Shown piece by piece: positions 19,128 through 29,064 of a stretch of DNA of 64,000 nucleotides. The notes beneath the pieces were generated by a model, which had not been told where the DNA came from, ran no database searches, and saw nothing but the letters and a program-made list of their open reading frames with translations. A program made the translations under genes and the position numbers. The stretch's first letter is position 1; each line of letters begins with the position of its first letter. This DNA comes from Mantamonas sphyraenae STR306. Taxonomy: Eukaryota; Protista; CRuMs. The stretch is taken from NCBI GenBank assembly GCA_026936335.1, contig JAPMXV010000034.1, forward strand, positions 620,001-684,000, written 5' to 3'.

Positions 19128-21548
19128 ATGACCGCCGTCACACCAGAAACCATCGTAGAGATGTTGAACGACGGAACGACGGTCGAGGAGGTTGCCTCTG
19201 CGTTGGAAAGTGTCGGAGAGGTAAGCAGCGTGGTATGAAACGACCCACAGGTGGCGGTCTCGGTGCCGGAACTGACGCTTCACTCATCGGCACAGAAACT
19301 GGACCTGAAACACGCCAGATTGACCAAAAGCGCACACCAACTTCTGTGCATGGCGTTGAAACAAAACAACACGGTTGCGGTGGCAAAGCTGAGCATGTAT
19401 GATGTGGACGTGGCGTTCCGCACAGAGATACTCTCCAACGTGCTTTGCACAAACACCACGTTGAGGTCCCTGCAGCTCAGCAACACCATCGTTTCGTCTG
19501 AGGGTGTCCCCCATCTGGCCAAAGCACTGCGAGTGAATACGACTCTGCAAGAGTTGCACCTCAGCTTGGCCGATGTGCGTGACGCGGGCGCAGAGGCGCT
19601 CAGCCAAGCCCTGGCTGACAACACAGGCCTGCTCGGGATCCATCTCAGCCTAAACAGCATCCAAAACAACGGGGCAGTGGCCCTGGCCAAGCTCTTGACG
19701 GTGCACCCCACACTGAGGGTTCTTTTGCTCGCTCACAACCGCATCGGCGACGAAGGGGCACAAGCGTTGGCCAAGGCTCTCGAGAAGAACAGGTCTCTGC
19801 ACATTCTACATTTGAGCAACAATCAGATAGGCAACCACGGTGCAGTGGCCTTGGGGGATGCGTTGCTTCATTCCAGAACTCTGCAATCCCTCCACCTGAA
19901 CACAAACGACATTGGCGACGCAGGCTCCCGTGCCATCGGGCAGGCACTCGCGGAAAACACAGCGTTGCAGATTCTCGAACTTGCACTCAATCGCATCCGA
20001 AGCGAGGGGGCCGTTGCATTGGGCGATGGCTTGGCAAGGAATTGCTCGCTGACCGAATTGACGCTGGACCAGAACAAAATTGGCGACGACGGTGCACAGG
20101 CTCTTGGGCGAGCACTGGAAGACAACTGCATGCTCAAAGAGCTTCATTTGGTCGACAACGAGATCGGCTGCGCCGGCGCCGCAGCGTTGGGTCGCGGATT
20201 GGCACAGAATGCCACCCTCTGCGAGCTCAGTCTCCGCTTCAACAGCATCGGTGATGAAGGAGCTGCAGCCATGGGAACTGGTTTGGCGTCGAACCACACC
20301 TTGACGGCATTGCACCTGGACGTCAACACCATTGAGGATGACGGCGCCGCTGGGTTGGCGGCAGCTCTTGCAGTGAACGGGACCTTGCGTGTTCTTCACC
20401 TCGCTTCCAACGAGATTGGGGACGACGGCGCAGTGGCCCTGGGGGATGCTCTTGGCCAGAACCGTGCCCTGCAGGTGCTCTCCTTGTTCGGCAACGCAAT
20501 TGCGGACGATGGCATGGCGGCCATTTCACGTGGCCTCGCTCTCAACCAATCCCTGCAAATGCTCAACATGGACGACAACCAGATTGGAGCACACGGCGTG
20601 TTGGACTTGGAACACTCGCTTGCAGTCAATGTGGCGCTGCAGGCCCTCAATCTCGCAAGCAACTGCATCGGGGACACAGGCACGGCAGCCATAGCACGTG
20701 GCCTGGCACACAACATGCGCCTGCAGGTTTTGCTCTTGGAGGCCAATGAGATTGGAGACAACGGGGCCATGGAGCTGGGGGAGGCGCTGGCGACAAACAC
20801 CGTCCTCCGCGAACTCTACGTGAATCGCAACGAGATCGCGGATGCAGGTGCAGCGGCCATTGCCATCGGCCTCACCAGCAACACATCCTTGAATCTGCTC
20901 TACCTCAACCAGAACCATGTTGGCGATGGCGCAGCAGGAAAATTCGGCCAAGCGCTCGCCAACAACTCGCATCTGCTTTGCTTGCGTCTCAGAGGAAACA
21001 GCATTGGCGCAAACGGCATGCGCTCCATAGTTGAGGGCATGCAGGAGAACAGGACGTGCTGGGATCTGTCCACAGACGAGGACGACACCACGATGCGCGA
21101 CATCCTTGACACAAATCGCAAACACGCCAGCGACTTTGTGGATGCTTGCAAAGCGGGCAACGTCGCCAAAATGGCCGAGTTGAGGGCATGGGGCGTGAAT
21201 GTGGACGCAAATCCCGAACGCATGACAGCGTTGGAGGTTGCCCTGCGTGAGGGTCGCGCGGCCACTGTGGCTCTGCTGAGAGAATGGGGAGCTAGAAAAG
21301 GGTTGAACGCGGTGAAAGAGGCAAGGACAAACAGCTGGAGCATGGCCTGGCACTGGGTTGGCAGTAGCCCAGCCGTGGACGCGGCCATGGAGACGGCGCT
21401 GGTGATGAACGCGGAGGAGAGAGAGGTGATGTTTGAGGCAGGTGGGATGGAGGAATACCAACCAACGGGGCAGTGGTGGACATTGCCCGACGAGGTCATG
21501 GAGCGAGTGGTTGGCTGGATGGGGCAGGGAGACTGGCGGAATGCCTGA
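19128..21548 (+). CDS. LRR-ankyrin-cassette protein, copy 4 (longest, ~20 LRRs)
   Basis: First exon followed by a GTAAGC intron at ~19221; 765-aa ORF of LRRs plus cassette. Confidence 0.9.
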
Positions 21549-22434
21549 GCAGCGTCCCGCGCGATGCCAACCAACCAAGCGGTGGGTGGAAGATGCGCGA
21601 TGTGAAGATGAGCAATACAGTGGGTCATGGCACTGACAATGAACGTGCACGCAGATGTGCGCACAGAAGAGCATCGAGGATGTCAAGGTTGCTCTGCAGA
21701 GTGGGGAGTGCGACGTGACCGTGGACGACGTTGCACAGGTGATTGCCACGCATTCAGTACGTGAAACCATGCGTCGTGTCAGAGTGTGGACTGTACGTGC
21801 GCTGACACAAGCACCCGGGGGGGCCCGCGACACTTCTCCCATTCAGCGTTTTCGCCTGATGAAGAACGAAATCAGTCAGGAAGGCATCCAAGTGCTGTGC
21901 GAGGCCATGGCTCTCAACACAACCGTGACCAGCTTGGATCTGACTCTCAATTTCGCCGGGTACGACAGTGCCGCGTGCGTTGCGGAAGTCCTCTCAACAA
22001 ACACAACCCTTCGTGTGCTGGAACTGAGCTTTGGCAGCATTGGGGACTCAGGAGCTGTGGCACTCGGTGATGCAATGTCCAGGAATGGCTCACTGCAGGA
22101 TCTCTCTCTGTTCCGCATCGGAATTGGGAACGAGGGCCTGGTCAGGTTGTCTCGCGGCCTGGCCGTGCACAACAACGTGCGCACACTCAACCTGGCTTTC
22201 AACCGCATCGGAAACGAAGGGGCAGAGGCGCTGGCAAAGTTTGCCGCCAAGAGCCATTCGTTGTGCAAGCTTCAGCTGGAAAACAACGCGGTTGCAGAAG
22301 CTGGAGGCGTGTCGCTTGGCAAGGCGGTAGGAGAGAGCAAGACCCTGCGTGTGCTGCACCTGCTTGGAAACCCTCTCGGAGACGACGGAGCAGTGGGAAT
22401 AGGCCAGGGTTTGGGCGTAACCCGGTCGCTGGCG

Positions 22435-22443
22435 TACCTGGAC
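22435..22443 (+). repeat. Left target-site duplication TACCTGGAC
   Basis: Exact copy at 27897-27905; identity does not extend on either side. Confidence 0.93.
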
Positions 22444-22635
22444 AAACCAGCGCGCTGTGCACAGTCTCGTTGTCCAACCAGCGGTCACACAAGTCATGTT
22501 ACCGGCTGGAAACTAGGAGCGTAGTGTTCCTGTAGGCAGATCTCAACCCCATCGCCCCATCGCAACGAGCTGGTGGGTGCCAATTGGCCACGTGCTGAGC
22601 CCGTGTCAGCACCTGCGCACCCAACCCGCACGATC

Positions 22636-25600
22636 ATGGAAGGCATCGCCGAGGATGAAGTGCTGGAGCTGGCCAAATCAATCCCCTCTTTGGTCAACGC
22701 CAAGTTTGACGGCGAGGACTGCATGGTGGCGACACTACTCAAACCGCCCGCACCTCTGACTATGACTCCATCGGAGGACCTCTTGAGGCGGCTCTGTTTG
22801 GACGTCACACACGCTGAGGATGAGCTCAGTGATACAGAGTCCGATGTTGCAGAGGAGGAGCTTCCAAAAGATGTTATGTCACGCGTGGAGCTGTTAGACG
22901 AAGAGGAGAGGGGACAGCTGTTGGAGTTCTCCGGGAAACGGAAAGGTAGAAGAGGCAAGGACCGGTCCAAACTGGTGCATGACCACCTGGACGAGCTGGC
23001 CCTGGACGAATGGCAGGTGTACTGGAATGGACTGCATGAAACAGTACGGGGAGACATGGAACGGGGCGCACAAGACGACAGCGCAGGGGAACCGACAGTG
23101 ACCACGGAGGGGGTTGGTGGCATGAAAACCAAACTCCTGTCCACCACTCTCCACGCCCTCAAATTGGCACGTACAGTGTATCACAGGGTTCTAGAGACCG
23201 TCGAGAACGAGCAGGCCCAGAGGGATGCCATGGCATCGGCGAGCAGCAGCAGCAGCAGCAGTGGCAATCGGGCAAAAGAGAAGGCCAAGAAGAAGGTCAA
23301 GCAGAATGCCAAAGGGAAGGACAAGAAGGAGGAAGGTGTACAGTCAGAATCGCGGAGCGACAAGGAAAAGGTGGTTGATGACCTGTTCGAGCTGATTGCA
23401 GGTGGGAAGGCGACGTACGAGGGCGTGGAGTCGGTGCTCGCAAACATCTCCGACTCTGGCGTGCGCAAGAAACTCGGTCCATGCAAGGAGTTGTTTGGGC
23501 TGCAACATACACAACACACGGGGTGGGATGTGAACAACCGTGAGGCCTCAACCCTAGTCATCGATCTGCATTTGGTGTCGTCGACCCCGATCAGGAGTCC
23601 CAATGCTTCCACAACGCTCAACTGCAGCTACAAAGTGATGAGGCAGCTGTTGTGCCTTGTACGCAGTGCGAACTACGAGCAGATCTGTTTCGTCTCGACC
23701 AGACCCTCGTTGCAGGATGCTCTCAGCGGATTGTGCCCACCGGGTGATCAGATCGCCGCGACTCGTGCTCTGTCTCGGCTTTGCGCCTTCCACGCTCTCG
23801 GTACGAGCGCAAACAGCCGGCAGAAGCGTGCCGCTGCGCTTGCAGGTTCTGCAGATGTCAGTATGGCCCAAGGAGTGTGGCTTCTGCGGAACGAGCTCTG
23901 TGAATCCGGGTCTTCCGTGCGCGAGGTGACCATCAGCGAGGCCATCCAGGAGGAGCATCTGGATGTGGTCAGCAACAACCTGAAACTTCCCAATGTCATG
24001 TACGTGTTGGGCTACAGCGGCCAACTGGCGTGGTTGTCGCCTGACGAGGTCCCGGAGTTTCCGCTGTATGTCAAAGACGATGGCATGCAGGAAGAGGAGG
24101 ACACAGCCGACAGTGGCCCGCGGGATGAGGACACAGCCGACGATGATGGCATGCAGGAAGAGGAGGACACAGCCGACAGTGACCCGCGGGAAGAGGACTC
24201 GGGCGGCGATGGCACGCGGGAAGAAGGCGGTGATGCCTCCGACGGCGACAAGGTTGGCGGAAAACACCGCGTCCAGCAGCTACAAACACACGCTACGGCC
24301 GCCAAAAACAACTTGCAGCAGGCCGTACGCCATATTCATGCGTTCAACCAGGTGGTTGCGGCAAAGCACTTGGACTGGACCAAGTTGGAGGAGGTGGAAA
24401 ATGAGCTGGAGCAGCAGCTGCAAGGGGCGATCCAGGAGGCCCAGGACGCAGAGGCAAGCACGACAACCATCGGCGGGTTGCACGAGTACACGCTGGACCA
24501 CAGGGTGCTGAAGCGGAACGCCGTGGGAGCGATCCTCTGTGGCCTCCACGCCGGAATGGTCGGTGCGGCGTTCACCAAGCGCGAAAGGACCCAAATCATT
24601 CAAACAGCGACATCAGAGTCACCGACAGACTGCTTTCGCTTGCCCTTCGTGCGTAAGAAGTTGCGGACATTGCGGAAAAACGCGGCCGTTCTTGGCGCTG
24701 CCTCCGCACGAACTGGCACGGATGCTCTGCACAGCTACACGCCTGCAGGCGTGGTGCAGGAGGCACTGGGCACGGATACCATGGACTGGGCTCTGCTCAA
24801 CAGGCTGTGCTCCTACACACAGGCTTGCGACGGCAACATCGATCTGCTGCGTGAGCCTGAATTGGTTGACGTCTGTGTAGAGCTGCCACAGAAACTTGCA
24901 GTCCACAAACGGCATACAGTGGAGCTCAAGGATGGCAAGAGGGGGGTTGTTAACGTGGGCATGCACTCTGTGCTGCCACGCAACCCGTCCGTTTTCGTTG
25001 ACGAGGATCTCAAGGAAGCGTTCCGTGTGTTGATGAGCCCACCGGCTCAAGGGGGACCGCAACTGTCGGAAGAGGCCAAGGTTATCGAGGAAATGCTGAA
25101 GTGGCTGAAATCCAGGCAGGAAGGCACCGCCGAGGGTGGAGGGGACGGGAAGGGGGGGTTGGACACCGAGATCGACGCATCTGACGAGGAGCAGTCGCAG
25201 TCGAGCAGCGTGGCAAACGCGATGGAGCAGGACACAACGCTTGACACCACGCAGCTTGGTCTGCTCAAATCCCTGCTGCAGATGATGCGCTGGAAAGAGA
25301 TCGCTGAGGTTACGAAATCTTTGGCCGCCGTTTCGTCACAATGGGCACCTGACCATGATTGTGAGGCAGCCACACAGCTGGGTGCTATCTCCCGGCTAGC
25401 GAATGACGTGAAGAAGGAGGAGATCTCGCGCGTGAACAGTCTGTTGCGCGGCGCGACACCGAACGCCGAAGCAGCTGCCGGGACCAGCGCTGCGCGCGCT
25501 GCAAAGCAAAAGGCTAAAGCAGCGCTGTCGATTCGTGAACAAGAGCTTTTGCCCAACGGAGCTACCCTGTCGAAGGCCTTCGCCATCGTCAGGGACAACA

Positions 25601-27714
25601 CGGAGGCAGCGGGCGAGCTGCGCCCACAGCCGGCCCTGTCCGCAAAGATGGTCGATACCCTGGTCAAGTTCACTGCAGCAGAAGTCAAGGCAAAGGTGAC
25701 AGCGTCTTCGGTGCCCCTTCGCTTCGGCAAGTGTGTGGCTGAGGCGCTACAGCTGCTGGGCGGCGATTCTCAAAACCCTGAGGCAATGGCTGCAGCGCGA
25801 GATCTCGCTGTGTGTGCAATCGCCAGGTTGGAATACTGGACGGTGAACGGGGTACTTAAGTCGCTGTCTAACCACGAGGTGAGCGACACGACTAATTGGA
25901 AGCTGGTGGATTGGAAGAGGAAGAAGACGCACACGACTCGTGAGTGGAGGGAGCACGTGAAGAGTATGTACACCAAGCGACACGGCGAGCACGGTGTCAC
26001 AATGCTGGAGCGCTTGGGTGAGATTCTGGAGAAAGACGGGGTGACCAACTTTTTCGACACGGACACGACCACGGAGGAAGAGGACGATGGGGAGGAGCAG
26101 GCGGAGGACACTGTGGACCACACGGTCGTTCAATACCTGCAGAACTCTGGTGTACAGTTCAACAGCGACGACAAACAACTCGTTCTCACACCAACCCATT
26201 TCAATCCGGGGGGCGGTTTGAGCGCGTTGCTGCCAACAGGCTCATTGAAGTCAGAAGCAGATGCACTGGCGCATTGGGACGTGGTCAAGACGTCTCCCTT
26301 CCTGCACAAGGAGGAGTACCTGTCCGTAGCCGAGTACGACGCGAGCTGGCACCGAAGGGTTCATGGGCTTCCAGTCGACAAGCACTCGGGGCTCACGGCG
26401 CCAGCACTCGCAGCGTTGCCAATGCTGCTCTTCATGGCTCCCCTGGTGAGCCGTATGAGCCGACAGGTGCTGGATGCGTGGTGCGGTGGATGGAGTGTGT
26501 CACCAGAAGGGAGGCTTCGCGTGGTTCTCTACAAAGCCGCGAACGCACCAGCCAAGACCAACGACCTGCAGGAGATCCTCCAGCCCACTGATGGGTTCAG
26601 GAGGGCGATCGACAATGCACGTGAGAACCTGAGCAAAGCACACGACGTGCACACCCAGCGGCAACTTGCCAAAGACTTTGTGCGCGTGCTGGTGACGGCC
26701 AAGCGGGCTGGGCTGGGCAAACAGGTCGTACAGGCGTTTGGATTCGACCTGGGGTTTGACTGGCTTGCCCGTGTGCCTGGGCGTGGCCGTACGGGAAGGA
26801 AACACCAACGGGACTTTTCGGGTATCCAGGGCAACCCGTCGCTTGTCAAGGACACGGTGTTCCTCGTGGACGACATTGGGAGACGGAAAGACACATACTG
26901 TGTGTTTGTGTGGGATGGGAACGAGCTGCTGCAACACAAGATCGGCAACCCTTCGCACTCGGACCTGCGCGCAAAGGCGCACTTGCATCGGCTCGCACGG
27001 TTGGACAAGCACAAAGACAAGCACAAGTGGAGGGCCGAGCATGAACACAGCAGAAAGGTACTACGACAAGAGGCTCAGCGCCTGGTGAGCATCACGCGGC
27101 AGGTCGCAAAGGCCTACGGAAAATCGCACTGTGTGCTGCTCGCGCAGAGCAAATTCTATGGCGGGCTATCACTGTCAAACAGGGTCAACACACTGATTGC
27201 AGAGGAGATGCCTTGGGTGGATGTGGCTGAGTGGCACACGTCCAGCGTGTGCATTTGCGGGCGGGCACTCACACGCACGGTGGAGCACACTGTGTCCAAG
27301 TGGGATCGCCAGTTGGCCTGTCTGCACTGTGGAGGGTCCCAAAACCACCACAACGCCCGCACGGCTCTGTTTGCGTACATTCAGGACAAGATTGGGCTGC
27401 CGATAATCTCGGATCGCGATGTGCGGGGATGCCAGGGAATCGTGTGGCGGATGATGTGCTTGTGGGCAACGGGGAAGGAGCCAGAGGCATTCAGCCCCAG
27501 GTGCAAGAAAGCACAGAAGAAGAAATGCGCAGAGGAGGAGCTGAAGACGTGCCTGCTGCGCGTGTTTGGAGATGCAGAGCCTAAAACGGAGGTGATCGAG
27601 GTTACGTTGCAAGAGCAAGACAAGCAGTCGGAAGAGATGGCGCAACCTACGAGGAGAAGTGCAAGGATTGCTGGGAAGCGACGAGCGGATGTACAGGGAG
27701 GGGGGAAGGAGTGA
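22636..27714 (+). CDS. Giant Fanzor/TnpB-family RNA-guided nuclease (1,692 aa from the first ATG; intronless)
   Basis: The C-terminus has RuvC-I VFLVDDIG (26857-26880), EWHTSSVCICG (E at 27229), CLHC zinc knuckle (27319-27330) and RuvC-III SDRDVRGCQGI (27409-27441), in the TnpB/Fanzor order and spacing. Confidence 0.85.
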   Translation: MEGIAEDEVLELAKSIPSLVNAKFDGEDCMVATLLKPPAPLTMTPSEDLLRRLCLDVTHAEDELSDTESDVAEEELPKDVMSRVELLDEEERGQLLEFSGKRKGRRGKDRSKLVHDHLDELALDEWQVYWNGLHETVRGDMERGAQDDSAGEPTVTTEGVGGMKTKLLSTTLHALKLARTVYHRVLETVENEQAQRDAMASASSSSSSSGNRAKEKAKKKVKQNAKGKDKKEEGVQSESRSDKEKVVDDLFELIAGGKATYEGVESVLANISDSGVRKKLGPCKELFGLQHTQHTGWDVNNREASTLVIDLHLVSSTPIRSPNASTTLNCSYKVMRQLLCLVRSANYEQICFVSTRPSLQDALSGLCPPGDQIAATRALSRLCAFHALGTSANSRQKRAAALAGSADVSMAQGVWLLRNELCESGSSVREVTISEAIQEEHLDVVSNNLKLPNVMYVLGYSGQLAWLSPDEVPEFPLYVKDDGMQEEEDTADSGPRDEDTADDDGMQEEEDTADSDPREEDSGGDGTREEGGDASDGDKVGGKHRVQQLQTHATAAKNNLQQAVRHIHAFNQVVAAKHLDWTKLEEVENELEQQLQGAIQEAQDAEASTTTIGGLHEYTLDHRVLKRNAVGAILCGLHAGMVGAAFTKRERTQIIQTATSESPTDCFRLPFVRKKLRTLRKNAAVLGAASARTGTDALHSYTPAGVVQEALGTDTMDWALLNRLCSYTQACDGNIDLLREPELVDVCVELPQKLAVHKRHTVELKDGKRGVVNVGMHSVLPRNPSVFVDEDLKEAFRVLMSPPAQGGPQLSEEAKVIEEMLKWLKSRQEGTAEGGGDGKGGLDTEIDASDEEQSQSSSVANAMEQDTTLDTTQLGLLKSLLQMMRWKEIAEVTKSLAAVSSQWAPDHDCEAATQLGAISRLANDVKKEEISRVNSLLRGATPNAEAAAGTSAARAAKQKAKAALSIREQELLPNGATLSKAFAIVRDNTEAAGELRPQPALSAKMVDTLVKFTAAEVKAKVTASSVPLRFGKCVAEALQLLGGDSQNPEAMAAARDLAVCAIARLEYWTVNGVLKSLSNHEVSDTTNWKLVDWKRKKTHTTREWREHVKSMYTKRHGEHGVTMLERLGEILEKDGVTNFFDTDTTTEEEDDGEEQAEDTVDHTVVQYLQNSGVQFNSDDKQLVLTPTHFNPGGGLSALLPTGSLKSEADALAHWDVVKTSPFLHKEEYLSVAEYDASWHRRVHGLPVDKHSGLTAPALAALPMLLFMAPLVSRMSRQVLDAWCGGWSVSPEGRLRVVLYKAANAPAKTNDLQEILQPTDGFRRAIDNARENLSKAHDVHTQRQLAKDFVRVLVTAKRAGLGKQVVQAFGFDLGFDWLARVPGRGRTGRKHQRDFSGIQGNPSLVKDTVFLVDDIGRRKDTYCVFVWDGNELLQHKIGNPSHSDLRAKAHLHRLARLDKHKDKHKWRAEHEHSRKVLRQEAQRLVSITRQVAKAYGKSHCVLLAQSKFYGGLSLSNRVNTLIAEEMPWVDVAEWHTSSVCICGRALTRTVEHTVSKWDRQLACLHCGGSQNHHNARTALFAYIQDKIGLPIISDRDVRGCQGIVWRMMCLWATGKEPEAFSPRCKKAQKKKCAEEELKTCLLRVFGDAEPKTEVIEVTLQEQDKQSEEMAQPTRRSARIAGKRRADVQGGGKE
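24076..24198 (+). repeat. In-frame 66-bp tandem duplication in the acidic linker of the Fanzor-like ORF
   Basis: DDGMQEEEDTADSGPRDED / DDGMQEEEDTADSDPREED, with copies starting at 24076 and 24142. Confidence 0.9.
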
Positions 27715-27896
27715 GATTTTTGATTTCGCAGCCGGCGTGGGCAGACTTGCAGAGCACAAAACACATACACAAGAGGGGTCCTGCGGGGTAGTATCACCAA
27801 CTCCGCAGGCATTGTCGCCGTGTTTCACCGCCAGGCGCACCTTTAAGTTGTAGGTGTCGTGCTCTGCCTGTGTGCACAGCCGGCTGACGCCAACAA
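27715..27896 (+). ncRNA. Putative Fanzor omega-RNA scaffold
   Basis: Lies between the stop codon and the right end. Nested stems: 27729-27736/27879-27886, 27749-27757/27859-27867, 27780-27788/27801-27809, 27816-27819/27834-27837 and 27838-27842/27852-27856. Confidence 0.72.
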
Positions 27897-27905
27897 TACC
27901 TGGAC
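27897..27905 (+). repeat. Right target-site duplication TACCTGGAC
   Basis: Exact copy at 22435-22443. Confidence 0.93.
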
Positions 27906-29064
27906 CTGTGCAGGTGTGGAATCGGCGACACCGGAGCAAAGGCCCTCGCCATGGCTTTGCAAACGAACGGGACGTTGACCCATCTGGATGTGAGCCACAA
28001 CGAGTTTGGGGAGATTGGTGGGGAAGCATTCGGGGAGGCCATTGCAGCGAACCGGTCGCTGCAGACGCTCGAGTTGTCTGGCAATCGATTTGGGGACGAT
28101 GCAGCAAAGGCGATCGGCAAAGGGTTGGAGGTGAACGGAGCATTGCATCGTCTCAATCTGTCGTACAATCAGATCGGCGACCCAGGGGTAGTGGCCATCG
28201 CGGCCGGCCTGGAAAGCAATCACTGCTTGCTCGAGCTCGTCATGGACGAGACCCACATGTGCGAGAAAGGAGCGGTCGCGTTGGGCAACGCGCTGAAAGT
28301 GAACGATGCACTGGAAGTCCTGAACCTTCACGGCAACACGATCGGGGATGGCGGCACGCAGGGCATTGCCCAGGGTCTCGAGTCGAATCGGTCCCTCCGC
28401 AGCCTTCGTATGTACAGGACGGGCCATACAGGTGACGCGGGCGCAGTCGCCATTGGAGAGATGCTAAGGAGGAACAAGCATGTGCAGGTGATTGCCATTG
28501 ACGACGTGGGAGACGCGGGTGAAGAGGCGATTTCGGACGCGATGGAGTCCAACACGACGTGTTTGCAGTTTGACGGCATGTTGGATGTGTACAAACACTT
28601 TCAGAGGAACCGAAGTGCAGCGAGTGCGTTTGTCGAAGCTTGCAAGGTGGGAGATTTTCAGCAGATGGCAAAGCTACGCGCATGGGGCGTGTCTGTGGAC
28701 GCCAAACCCTACGGGCTGTCCACAGCACTGGAGATGGCTGTGCGGGCGCACAAAGAAGACACTGTGGAAACGCTGAGGTTGTGGGGCGCCAAAAAGACAA
28801 AAGGAGCAGTGGAAGCAGCGAGGGGGAACAACTGGAGCAGGGCGTGGCATTGGATTGGAAGCAGCCTCGAACTGGACGTGGCCATGGAGACAGCGCTGGT
28901 GATAAATGCGGAGGAGAGGGAGGTGATGTTTGAGGCAGGTGGGATGGAGGAATACCAACCGACAGCACAGTGGTGGACATTGCCGGACGAGGTGATGGAG
29001 CGAGTGATGCAGTGGATGTGGCAAATCGGCTGCGCTTGATTCTGCCTCCTCTCCCTCTCTCTCC

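Follow-up and report, generated by a model that had tools for sequence, protein, structure and literature searches.

A giant Fanzor1-type protein on a Tc1/IS630-like element of Mantamonas sphyraenae, with a possible homing scar at its left junction

Within a 64,000-nucleotide stretch of the genome of the protist Mantamonas sphyraenae STR306 (contig JAPMXV010000034.1 of assembly GCA_026936335.1, positions 620,001 to 684,000; hereafter the window), a mobile element encoding a giant Fanzor-type protein is inserted in a leucine-rich repeat (LRR) gene. The best overall explanation, and a likely one, is a non-autonomous Tc1/IS630 element that carries a giant Fanzor1 and whose left junction retains a scar from restorative homing. 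An exact 9-bp repeat, TACCTGGAC, occurs at positions 22435-22443 and 27897-27905, with 5,453 bp in between; a 9-bp match at fixed ends would arise by chance with a probability of ∼6e-6. When the insert and one copy of the repeat are removed, the host gene reads as a 640-aa open reading frame (ORF), with no internal stop and with its 28-residue LRR register unbroken, which confirms the in-frame LRR described in an earlier reading made from the sequence alone (the sequence-only reading). That reading took the repeat for the target site duplication (TSD) of a possibly new class of element, a view that the other copies in the genome do not support.

Copies, ends and carrier transposon

The assembly searched comprises 25,061,354 bases in 78 contigs. 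In total, eight full copies of the element were detected, that of the window among them; three of the others are ∼95% and four ∼81% identical to it. The ORF is open in seven of the eight, the sole broken copy (L007, G000:C50) having a frameshift near codon 1225, intact ends and a TC TSD. In six of the eight, the left end begins with TTGTCC, which precedes the point where the window copy begins. Once these six bases are restored, the left and right 26-mers form an imperfect terminal inverted repeat (TIR), with 18 of 26 positions matching in register. The bases immediately outside the TIRs form a 2-bp TN duplication (TG, TA, TG, TG and TC, plus one TG/TT mismatch, i.e., five of six matching). 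The TSD of the family is 2 bp (TN) and not 9 bp. The sequence-only reading is supported in that this is a young, multi-copy mobile element inserted in an LRR gene. The further copies that it expected were also found, but none of the other full copies has the 9-bp TSD that it had treated as the signature of the element.

The same end design (TTGT, six variable bases, a conserved core, TGTGCACA; at the right end ACAA and then T) is shared by related families, and was found together with the TN duplication in family B (8 of 10), C18 and C15. Over 20 sites, the left-junction duplications were TA (10), TG (7), TC (2) and TT (1), and are thus not strictly TA. The base preceding TN was G at 17 of these sites (G-T-N), a count in which two sites have a common flank and some sites were found by a pattern requiring T. 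A host target motif was rejected as the explanation of TTGTCC: these bases complete the TIR in register, with TN outside them. Retrotransposition was likewise rejected: a reverse transcriptase was not seen, a poly-A tail is absent and the TIR ends are exact. A MuDR-type element, with a constant 9-11 bp TSD and long TIRs, is contradicted by the TN junctions of the other copies.

The window element has only 192 bp ahead of its ATG and contains no transposase. A protein search with the C-terminus of its product gave 38 matches in the genome, mostly in open frames of 1,570-2,060 codons, and a further family was found via its ends. In family B, a 339-aa DD34E transposase is located just inside the left end (DDE_3, E 5.6e-27, with a paired-type helix-turn-helix), and is intact in eight copies (L049 and seven more) that are 99-100% identical. 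The left end of family B matches that of the window family at 18 of 26 positions, including a 12-nt run in register. On sequence grounds, the window element looks like a non-autonomous Tc1/IS630 (DD34E) member with an autonomous partner in the same genome. Since family B combines similar ends with an intact transposase and the window element has none, mobilisation in trans by the sister-family enzyme is quite probable. The possibly undescribed class without a transposase, as proposed in the sequence-only reading, is thus not supported, given that a sister family of like end design has a DD34E transposase of its own.

The resemblance to Tc1/IS630 DD34E elements lies in the sister transposase (paired-type helix-turn-helix and DDE_3, with a 34-residue D-E spacing), the short TIRs and a 2-bp TSD of which TA is the commonest form. 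The group differs in its TN rather than strict TA target, in its TTGT...ACAA ends and in the lack of a transposase in the window element, and constitutes a relaxed variant. Fanzor1 proteins in Tc1/mariner elements are already known (PMC3627910; PMC10530073).

Several related copies show features of their own. In the subgroup L023-L028 (C43, C18, C30, C45, C33), N-D-I-G is found at RuvC-I and the 26-bp TIRs are near-perfect (25/26 in C18); the C33 copy is frameshifted. A solo right end of 40 bp was also found on C33, and a 1,486-aa ORF beside it, considered as a possible transposase, was rejected as an unrelated host gene. L059 and L061 (C17:156471, C41:146511) share the same left flank and have different right flanks, while L057 and L005 have mismatched TN; both patterns point to copies that have recombined, or else to joins made in assembly. 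A 5′-truncated family C fragment (L048:7120-7620, G000:C51:218620-219120) extends from the zinc finger to the right end in an ankyrin-repeat gene region, which fits the 3′ excess of these elements. Family F (L065, L071 and L066; G000:C15:264233-269605) encodes a giant Fanzor of >1,530 aa, probably in two exons, with a canonical RuvC-III, a TA TSD and the same end design. The C52 and C71 copies retain only the first 93 codons of the transposase. A second transposase group (47% identical) precedes the family D Fanzors, whose right ends differ (ending in TACAG). In the N-terminal regions of family B (L046, L049, L051) and family D (L044, L050), a small Cys-rich region is followed by motifs that by eye resemble ubiquitin-specific (USP)/papain-type proteases, with a Cys box (N...CW) and a His box (GxHY...W..yDD); a Pfam search of these regions found nothing.

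The giant Fanzor protein and its 3′ tail

The insert contains a single intronless ORF of 1,692 aa (22636-27714), in agreement with the ∼1,700 aa of the sequence-only reading. The protein is nearly three times the usual Fanzor size: published Fanzors are of ∼600 aa (PMC10530073), and the solved Fanzor chains among the fold matches have 590-726 aa. Its C-terminus is very probably a Fanzor1-type RuvC with a D-E-D triad, and its sequence and model point to a probable RNA-guided DNA cutter. The triad lies exactly where it had been placed (codons 26872, 27229 and 27418, i.e., aa 1413, 1532 and 1595) and appears intact. No variation was seen among 19 paralogues, with identities as low as 16%, at the RuvC-I Asp and Gly, at the pre-finger Glu, at three Cys or at the RuvC-III Arg-Asp. 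The Fanzor1 C-terminal motif, D-X(125-275)-[TS][TS]-XX-C4 zinc finger-X(5-50)-RD, is represented by D1413, TSS at 1535, CxC...CxxC and RD at 1594-1595, with a D-to-TS spacing (122) at the edge of the published range. Glu is absent from the end of the fourth strand in every family, and the invariant E1532 precedes the first Cys (1539), which bears out the relocated RuvC-II Glu proposed from the sequence. The RuvC-I motif D-P-G, which is near exclusive in Fanzors (a tendency, and no absolute criterion), is D-I-G in the window protein and D-P-G in the same columns of family B.

In the C-terminal model, the RuvC core has predicted local distance difference test (pLDDT) values of 75-88, and values are low outside it, including upstream, where WED and REC domains would be expected. 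A fold search, of the kind that the sequence-only reading had proposed as a check, recovered a RuvC fold, with PpFz on top (E 5.8e-3), followed by Cas12f, Cas12g, TnpB and SpuFz. A further fold comparison gave CasPhi (Z 12.0, root-mean-square deviation 3.8, 183 aligned) and GtFz (Z 8.4), and every fold list was headed by Fanzor, Cas12 or TnpB. The language-model (Atlas) neighbours at 0.95-0.96 were TNB-bearing clusters of giant viruses, Mucoromycota and Chlorophyta. Between subfamilies, the ratio of nonsynonymous to synonymous substitution rates (dN/dS) was 0-0.17 over the RuvC and mostly 0.2-0.4 over the rest (0.28-0.36 for the whole ORF), so that the entire ORF, including the ∼1,300 N-terminal residues, is under purifying selection. 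The protein ends in a basic tail, which we take to be a candidate nuclear localisation signal or nucleosome anchor.

In the N-terminal region, no credible Pfam match was obtained for the first 1,400 aa, hhalign of its profile against family F was not significant, and a wide fold search of its model was filled by helical hairpin matches. In a low-confidence model, aa ∼300-470 form an alpha/beta core with a long helical insert, in a secondary-structure order that matches the three-layer FEN1-type fold and its helical arch; for this part Foldseek gave FEN1 (best E 0.029, probability 0.92) and T5 exonuclease (probability 0.94), with GEN1 and XPG recurring; the Atlas leads were PIN/XPG-like (0.81-0.87). 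Only the first of the FEN1-type acidic residues is invariant in the family alignment, and the later D-x-D positions are non-acidic; consequently the FEN1-like part, if real, is probably not a nuclease. Judging from the model, a module that binds nicked or flap DNA is a tentative suggestion for the role of the FEN1-like part of the N-terminal 1,300 aa. In family F, the FEN1-like acidic motifs look intact by eye.

The ORF is followed by a 182-nt tail that folds more stably than its shuffles (z -4.3), and the diverged C29 tail folds alike (z -4.5). Together with the 3′ TSD, the tail is a candidate omegaRNA scaffold, and the first ∼16 nt beyond it are its predicted guide (Table 1), to which no second match was found within the window. 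The C29 element (L053 and L022; G000:C29:561255-566905) has ∼150 nt of 3′-tail sequence, omegaRNA-like hairpin included, copied in inverted orientation at its left end, and the first 10 bases of its TIR are replaced by other sequence. In read run X3, depth over 22180-28150 was 9-14 in the flanks and up to ∼1,000 close to the element's 3′ end, the longest contig being 20 kb. Although listed as presumed DNA, this run has the look of an RNA library, in which case transcription of the family is strong and a contig runs past the right end into the flank.

Table 1. Features of the element, its host gene and the sister-family transposase (window positions, unless another locus is given; TAM, target-adjacent motif)
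Feature	Position	Strand	Basis
Host LRR_6 gene (NLRC3/RanGAP-like), interrupted, 5′ part	21655..22443	+	Pfam LRR_6, E 6.7e-22; in-frame rejoining with 3′ part
Canonical 2-bp target duplication (TN, here TA) following a G; G-T-N site and predicted TAM	22435..22436	+	TN in canonical copies; G at 17/20 sites
Seven target-derived bases in place of the first six of the element (TTGTCC); together with TA they form the 9-bp repeat, their last C being a 1-nt microhomology	22437..22443	+	Comparison with six intact copies
Remnant of left 26-bp imperfect TIR (nt 7-26), ending in the palindrome TGTGCACA	22444..22463	+	
Giant Fanzor1-type protein, single intronless ORF, 1,692 aa, from ATG at 22636 to stop	22636..27714	+	Open in 7/8 copies
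Probable degenerate FEN1/XPG/PIN-like 5′-nuclease fold, aa ∼300-470	23533..24045	+	Weak; only first Asp (aa 310) appears kept
Acidic low-complexity repeat linker	24076..24240	+	Repeats D1/D3; pLDDT <50; least constrained region
RuvC-I strand with catalytic Asp (codon 26872), D-I-G; D-P-G in sister family	26860..26880	+	D and G invariant; strand in model
Relocated RuvC-II Glu (codon 27229), then TNB zinc finger	27229..27330	+	E, T and C invariant; Pfam Cas12f1-like_TNB, E 0.0067
RuvC-III R-D (Asp codon 27418), helix and G-x-x-P tail	27412..27500	+	R, D, G and P invariant
Basic C-terminal tail	27646..27690	+	Similar tail in C29 relative
Candidate omegaRNA scaffold, 3′ tail to end of 3′ TSD	27715..27898	+	Fold z -4.3; ∼98% identical in eight copies
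Right 26-bp TIR, intact, ending ACAA	27871..27896	+	
Right copy of 9-bp repeat, the original target	27897..27905	+	
Predicted guide, first ∼16 nt past the 3′ TA, matching the empty LRR allele	27899..27914	+	Inferred from Fanzor1 architecture (PMC13565253)
Host LRR gene, 3′ part	27906..29039	+	Pfam LRR_6, E 1.2e-19
Family B DD34E Tc1/IS630 transposase	L049:405-1424 (G000:C68:288704-289720)		Intact, upstream of spliced-looking giant Fanzor with D-P-G

The insertion site and the left junction

Both junctions are crossed with 0 differences by unique read contigs of runs X1 and X2, and each is bridged by a contig in run X3. This rules out misassembly, one of the objections that the sequence-only reading had named as fatal to its case. 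The ratio of read depth between element and flank was 3.7-3.9, for four near-identical copies. The left-junction contig is unbranched at the junction, and no joint skipping the element was seen in any run, as judged from contigs, in which rare variants are dropped. The published genome is diploid (PMC10492846), and these data suggest that the culture has no empty allele: either the insertion is homozygous, or the other haplotype lacks the LRR locus or has diverged there. Homozygosity may reflect homing to the homologue, and loss of heterozygosity would account for it equally well. The interrupted gene (21655-29039) and its neighbour (19251-21548) are tandem LRR_6 genes with a near-identical C-terminal cassette after an ankyrin-like stretch.

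The window copy lacks five to six of its left-end bases, and target sequence stands in their place, nearly in register. In total, three independent loci were observed in which the start of the left TIR is missing and a longer repeat extends from TN: 9 bp in the window, up to 10 bp in L008 and 11 bp in a 35-bp mini-element on C44 that is also deleted between its two TGTGCACA palindromes. Relative to the normal junction, the element resumes with base 7 at offset 7 in L008, with base 9 at offset 9 in C44 and with base 6 at offset 7 in the window. The target bases gained versus element bases lost are thus 6 versus 6, 8 versus 8 and 7 versus 5-6, respectively, with 1-2 nt of microhomology in each case. 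Among the protein-found copies, altered ends were observed in 4 of 21 left ends versus 0 of 24 right ends (Fisher p 0.04); several further copies (of families C, D and E, most of F and three of the C18 group) lie outside the left-end count, which includes two ambiguous, not in-register cases (C29 and C71). The window copy is also a mosaic: its 5′ part is nearest to L002-L004, while 26718-27618 is nearest to L006, which belongs to the other subfamily and differs from it at 0-4 positions per 300 bp. Repair synthesis that enters via the right end would be expected to give this pattern.

The presence of right-flank bases at the left junction implies either that the site was empty and was then broken downstream of TN, or that integration was one-sided. 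A Fanzor cut supplies the former route, and from the sequence and by analogy we lean slightly towards the 9-bp repeat being the scar of repair after such a cut at the emptied site. The element would have been inserted by cut-and-paste at a G-T-N site, through the sister-family transposase acting in trans, with duplication of the 2-bp TN. Its 3′ tail, transcribed into the flank, would yield an omegaRNA whose guide matches the empty site, G-T-N serving as the TAM; in Fanzor1, the 5′ TSD is part of the TAM and the 3′ TSD part of the scaffold (PMC13565253). Upon excision and rejoining, the Fanzor would cut within the right flank, whereupon a filled sister or homologue would serve as the repair template and the element would be restored (restorative homing). 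The left broken end would keep TA and seven flank bases (trimmed to 6-8 unmatched bases across the scarred loci) and invade the filled template through the left flank. Extension from the 1-nt microhomology, with the tail not removed, would then replace the first 5-6 bases of the element by target bases. The scarred allele would escape re-cutting, since every match kept is shorter than the ∼10 nt required by SpuFz1 (PMC10432273), and since at the right junction A, and not G, precedes TA.

One-sided integration that went wrong is a possible, though clearly less probable, source of the repeat for the same element and the same Fanzor. Here the right end would be joined at TN, the left end trimmed and the other strand nicked nearby, with host end-joining completing the insertion and no Fanzor cut involved. 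This would suit the right ends, which are always exact at TN, and the 1-2 nt microhomologies of the left junctions, as from end-joining; C29 and C71 resemble simple trimmed ends, and the TIRs differ at 8 of 26 bases, such that the left end may be less well handled. However, the register, i.e., the equal gain of target and loss of element at three loci, is left without a reason, and Fanzor elements carried by Helitrons, with a transposase that makes no TSD, bear the same signature. Far less credible is the new class of the sequence-only reading, with a MuDR-like 9-bp TSD and possibly with the giant protein as its own integrase. The exact repeat at this locus, the lack of a transposase inside the element, the >1,000 unexplained conserved residues and the existence of MuDR-type Fanzor elements with 9-bp TSDs all speak for it, but no other full copy has such a TSD, most have intact 26-bp TIRs with TN, and relatives with the same ends carry the DD34E transposase. 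It is also improbable that the protein, though derived from a Fanzor, has lost efficient DNA cutting and serves, by way of its large N-terminal part, as a platform for RNA-guided binding or chromatin modification. Its giant size, the family-specific N-termini, the D-I-G in place of the usual D-P-G and the basic, chromatin-type tail fit such a role; against it, none of the three catalytic residues varies between families that share only 16-22% identity, and the RuvC is the most constrained region.

The explanation by a Tc1/IS630-borne Fanzor and its homing also has a number of observations against it. In-register replacement was found at only three loci; in C29 and C71, 10-11 bases of the left end are gone and few or none were gained. 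The comparison of left and right ends was confined to Fanzor-bearing copies of this genome. The empty site, which the sequence-only reading had proposed to look for, was found neither in any paralogue nor in the four read sets. Fanzors cut 14-21 nt into the target, and Fanzor1 non-target-strand cuts are at 14-17 nt (PMC10432273); the retained tails (6-8 nt) are shorter, which requires the assumption of trimming. The tail alignment shows weak covariation (three pairs, from one diverged sequence). As for the protein, no fold match had E <0.001, and the model around the Glu and the zinc finger has pLDDT <50. No sequence relative of the C-terminus outside this genome was found by PDB phmmer and profile searches or among 1.84 billion representatives, nor by word-indexed searches in which the alignment or the full-length protein was the query; these blank results do not in themselves show that relatives are absent.

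Relation to known systems and significance

The closest parallel in organisation is SPu-1/SpuFz1, together with other Mariner-borne Fanzor1 elements (PMC3627910; PMC10432273), which have a single Fanzor ORF, short TIRs (33 bp there, 26 bp here), a 2-bp TSD starting with T, no transposase, the D...TS-x-x-C4 zinc finger...RD motif, a relocated Glu and a structured 3′ tail. In contrast, their proteins are of 633-638 aa (versus 1,692 aa) and the TSD is TA (versus TN with a preceding G); no sequence similarity is detectable, and the window protein has a probable FEN1/PIN-like insert and D-I-G rather than D-P-G. Among Fanzors, PpFz1 and GtFz1 (PDB 9cf0 and 9cer; PMC11423790) match the fold of the C-terminal model best (E 5.8e-3 and Z 8.4, respectively), but their solved chains have 590-726 aa and 13% identity, and ∼1,300 further residues of the window protein have no counterpart in them. 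Extra domains and omegaRNAs of ∼150 nt are known in Fanzor1 (PMC11423790).

The Fanzor1 elements CRe-1/2/3 of Chlamydomonas (Helitron2) and MCi-2 of Mucor likewise have intact 3′ ends, damaged 5′ ends and variable duplications from the normal insertion point (PMC3627910). Up to 70% of CRe-1/2/3 copies have variable TSDs of 7-19 bp, which are confined to 5′ ends that depart from the consensus, versus 1 of 200 in a Fanzor-free sibling (PMC3627910). Their carriers differ, however, being Helitron or Crypton-like, and in that study the mechanism was left open and in-register replacement was not reported. The proposed cycle resembles the restorative homing of IS605/IS607 TnpB (PMC13565253) in its right-flank guide, left-junction TAM, empty-site cut and repair from a filled copy. 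The TnpB systems are bacterial, whereas the carrier here is a DDE cut-and-paste element in a diploid; homing has been shown for bacterial TnpB and, according to the same review, not yet for a eukaryotic Fanzor. Searches of the literature turned up nothing on Mantamonas Fanzors or on in-register left-end scars.

A Fanzor1 on a Tc1-type element is of a known kind; what is new is the protein's size, the absence of relatives from the searches made, the relaxed target (G-T-N), a probable FEN1-like insert and the pattern of the scars. A further suggestion, speculative and on balance unlikely, is that the giant Fanzors of Mantamonas are multi-domain homing machines, in which the RuvC is fused to FEN1-like and further unknown DNA-processing domains that steer repair towards copying of the element, the left-end replacements being the genomic record of homing.

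A Fanzor of ∼1,700 aa from a deep-branching eukaryote extends the family to the size of Cas12a and Cas9, and may hold new accessory domains. The locus constitutes a testable kit, comprising the protein, the tail RNA, a predicted G-T-N TAM, a guide and a cognate transposase. If in-register replacement is a homing scar, this sequence signature could be read in any assembly and tallied over the genomes of eukaryotes, and the variable TSDs of the Chlamydomonas Fanzor elements, unexplained since 2013, would be accounted for.

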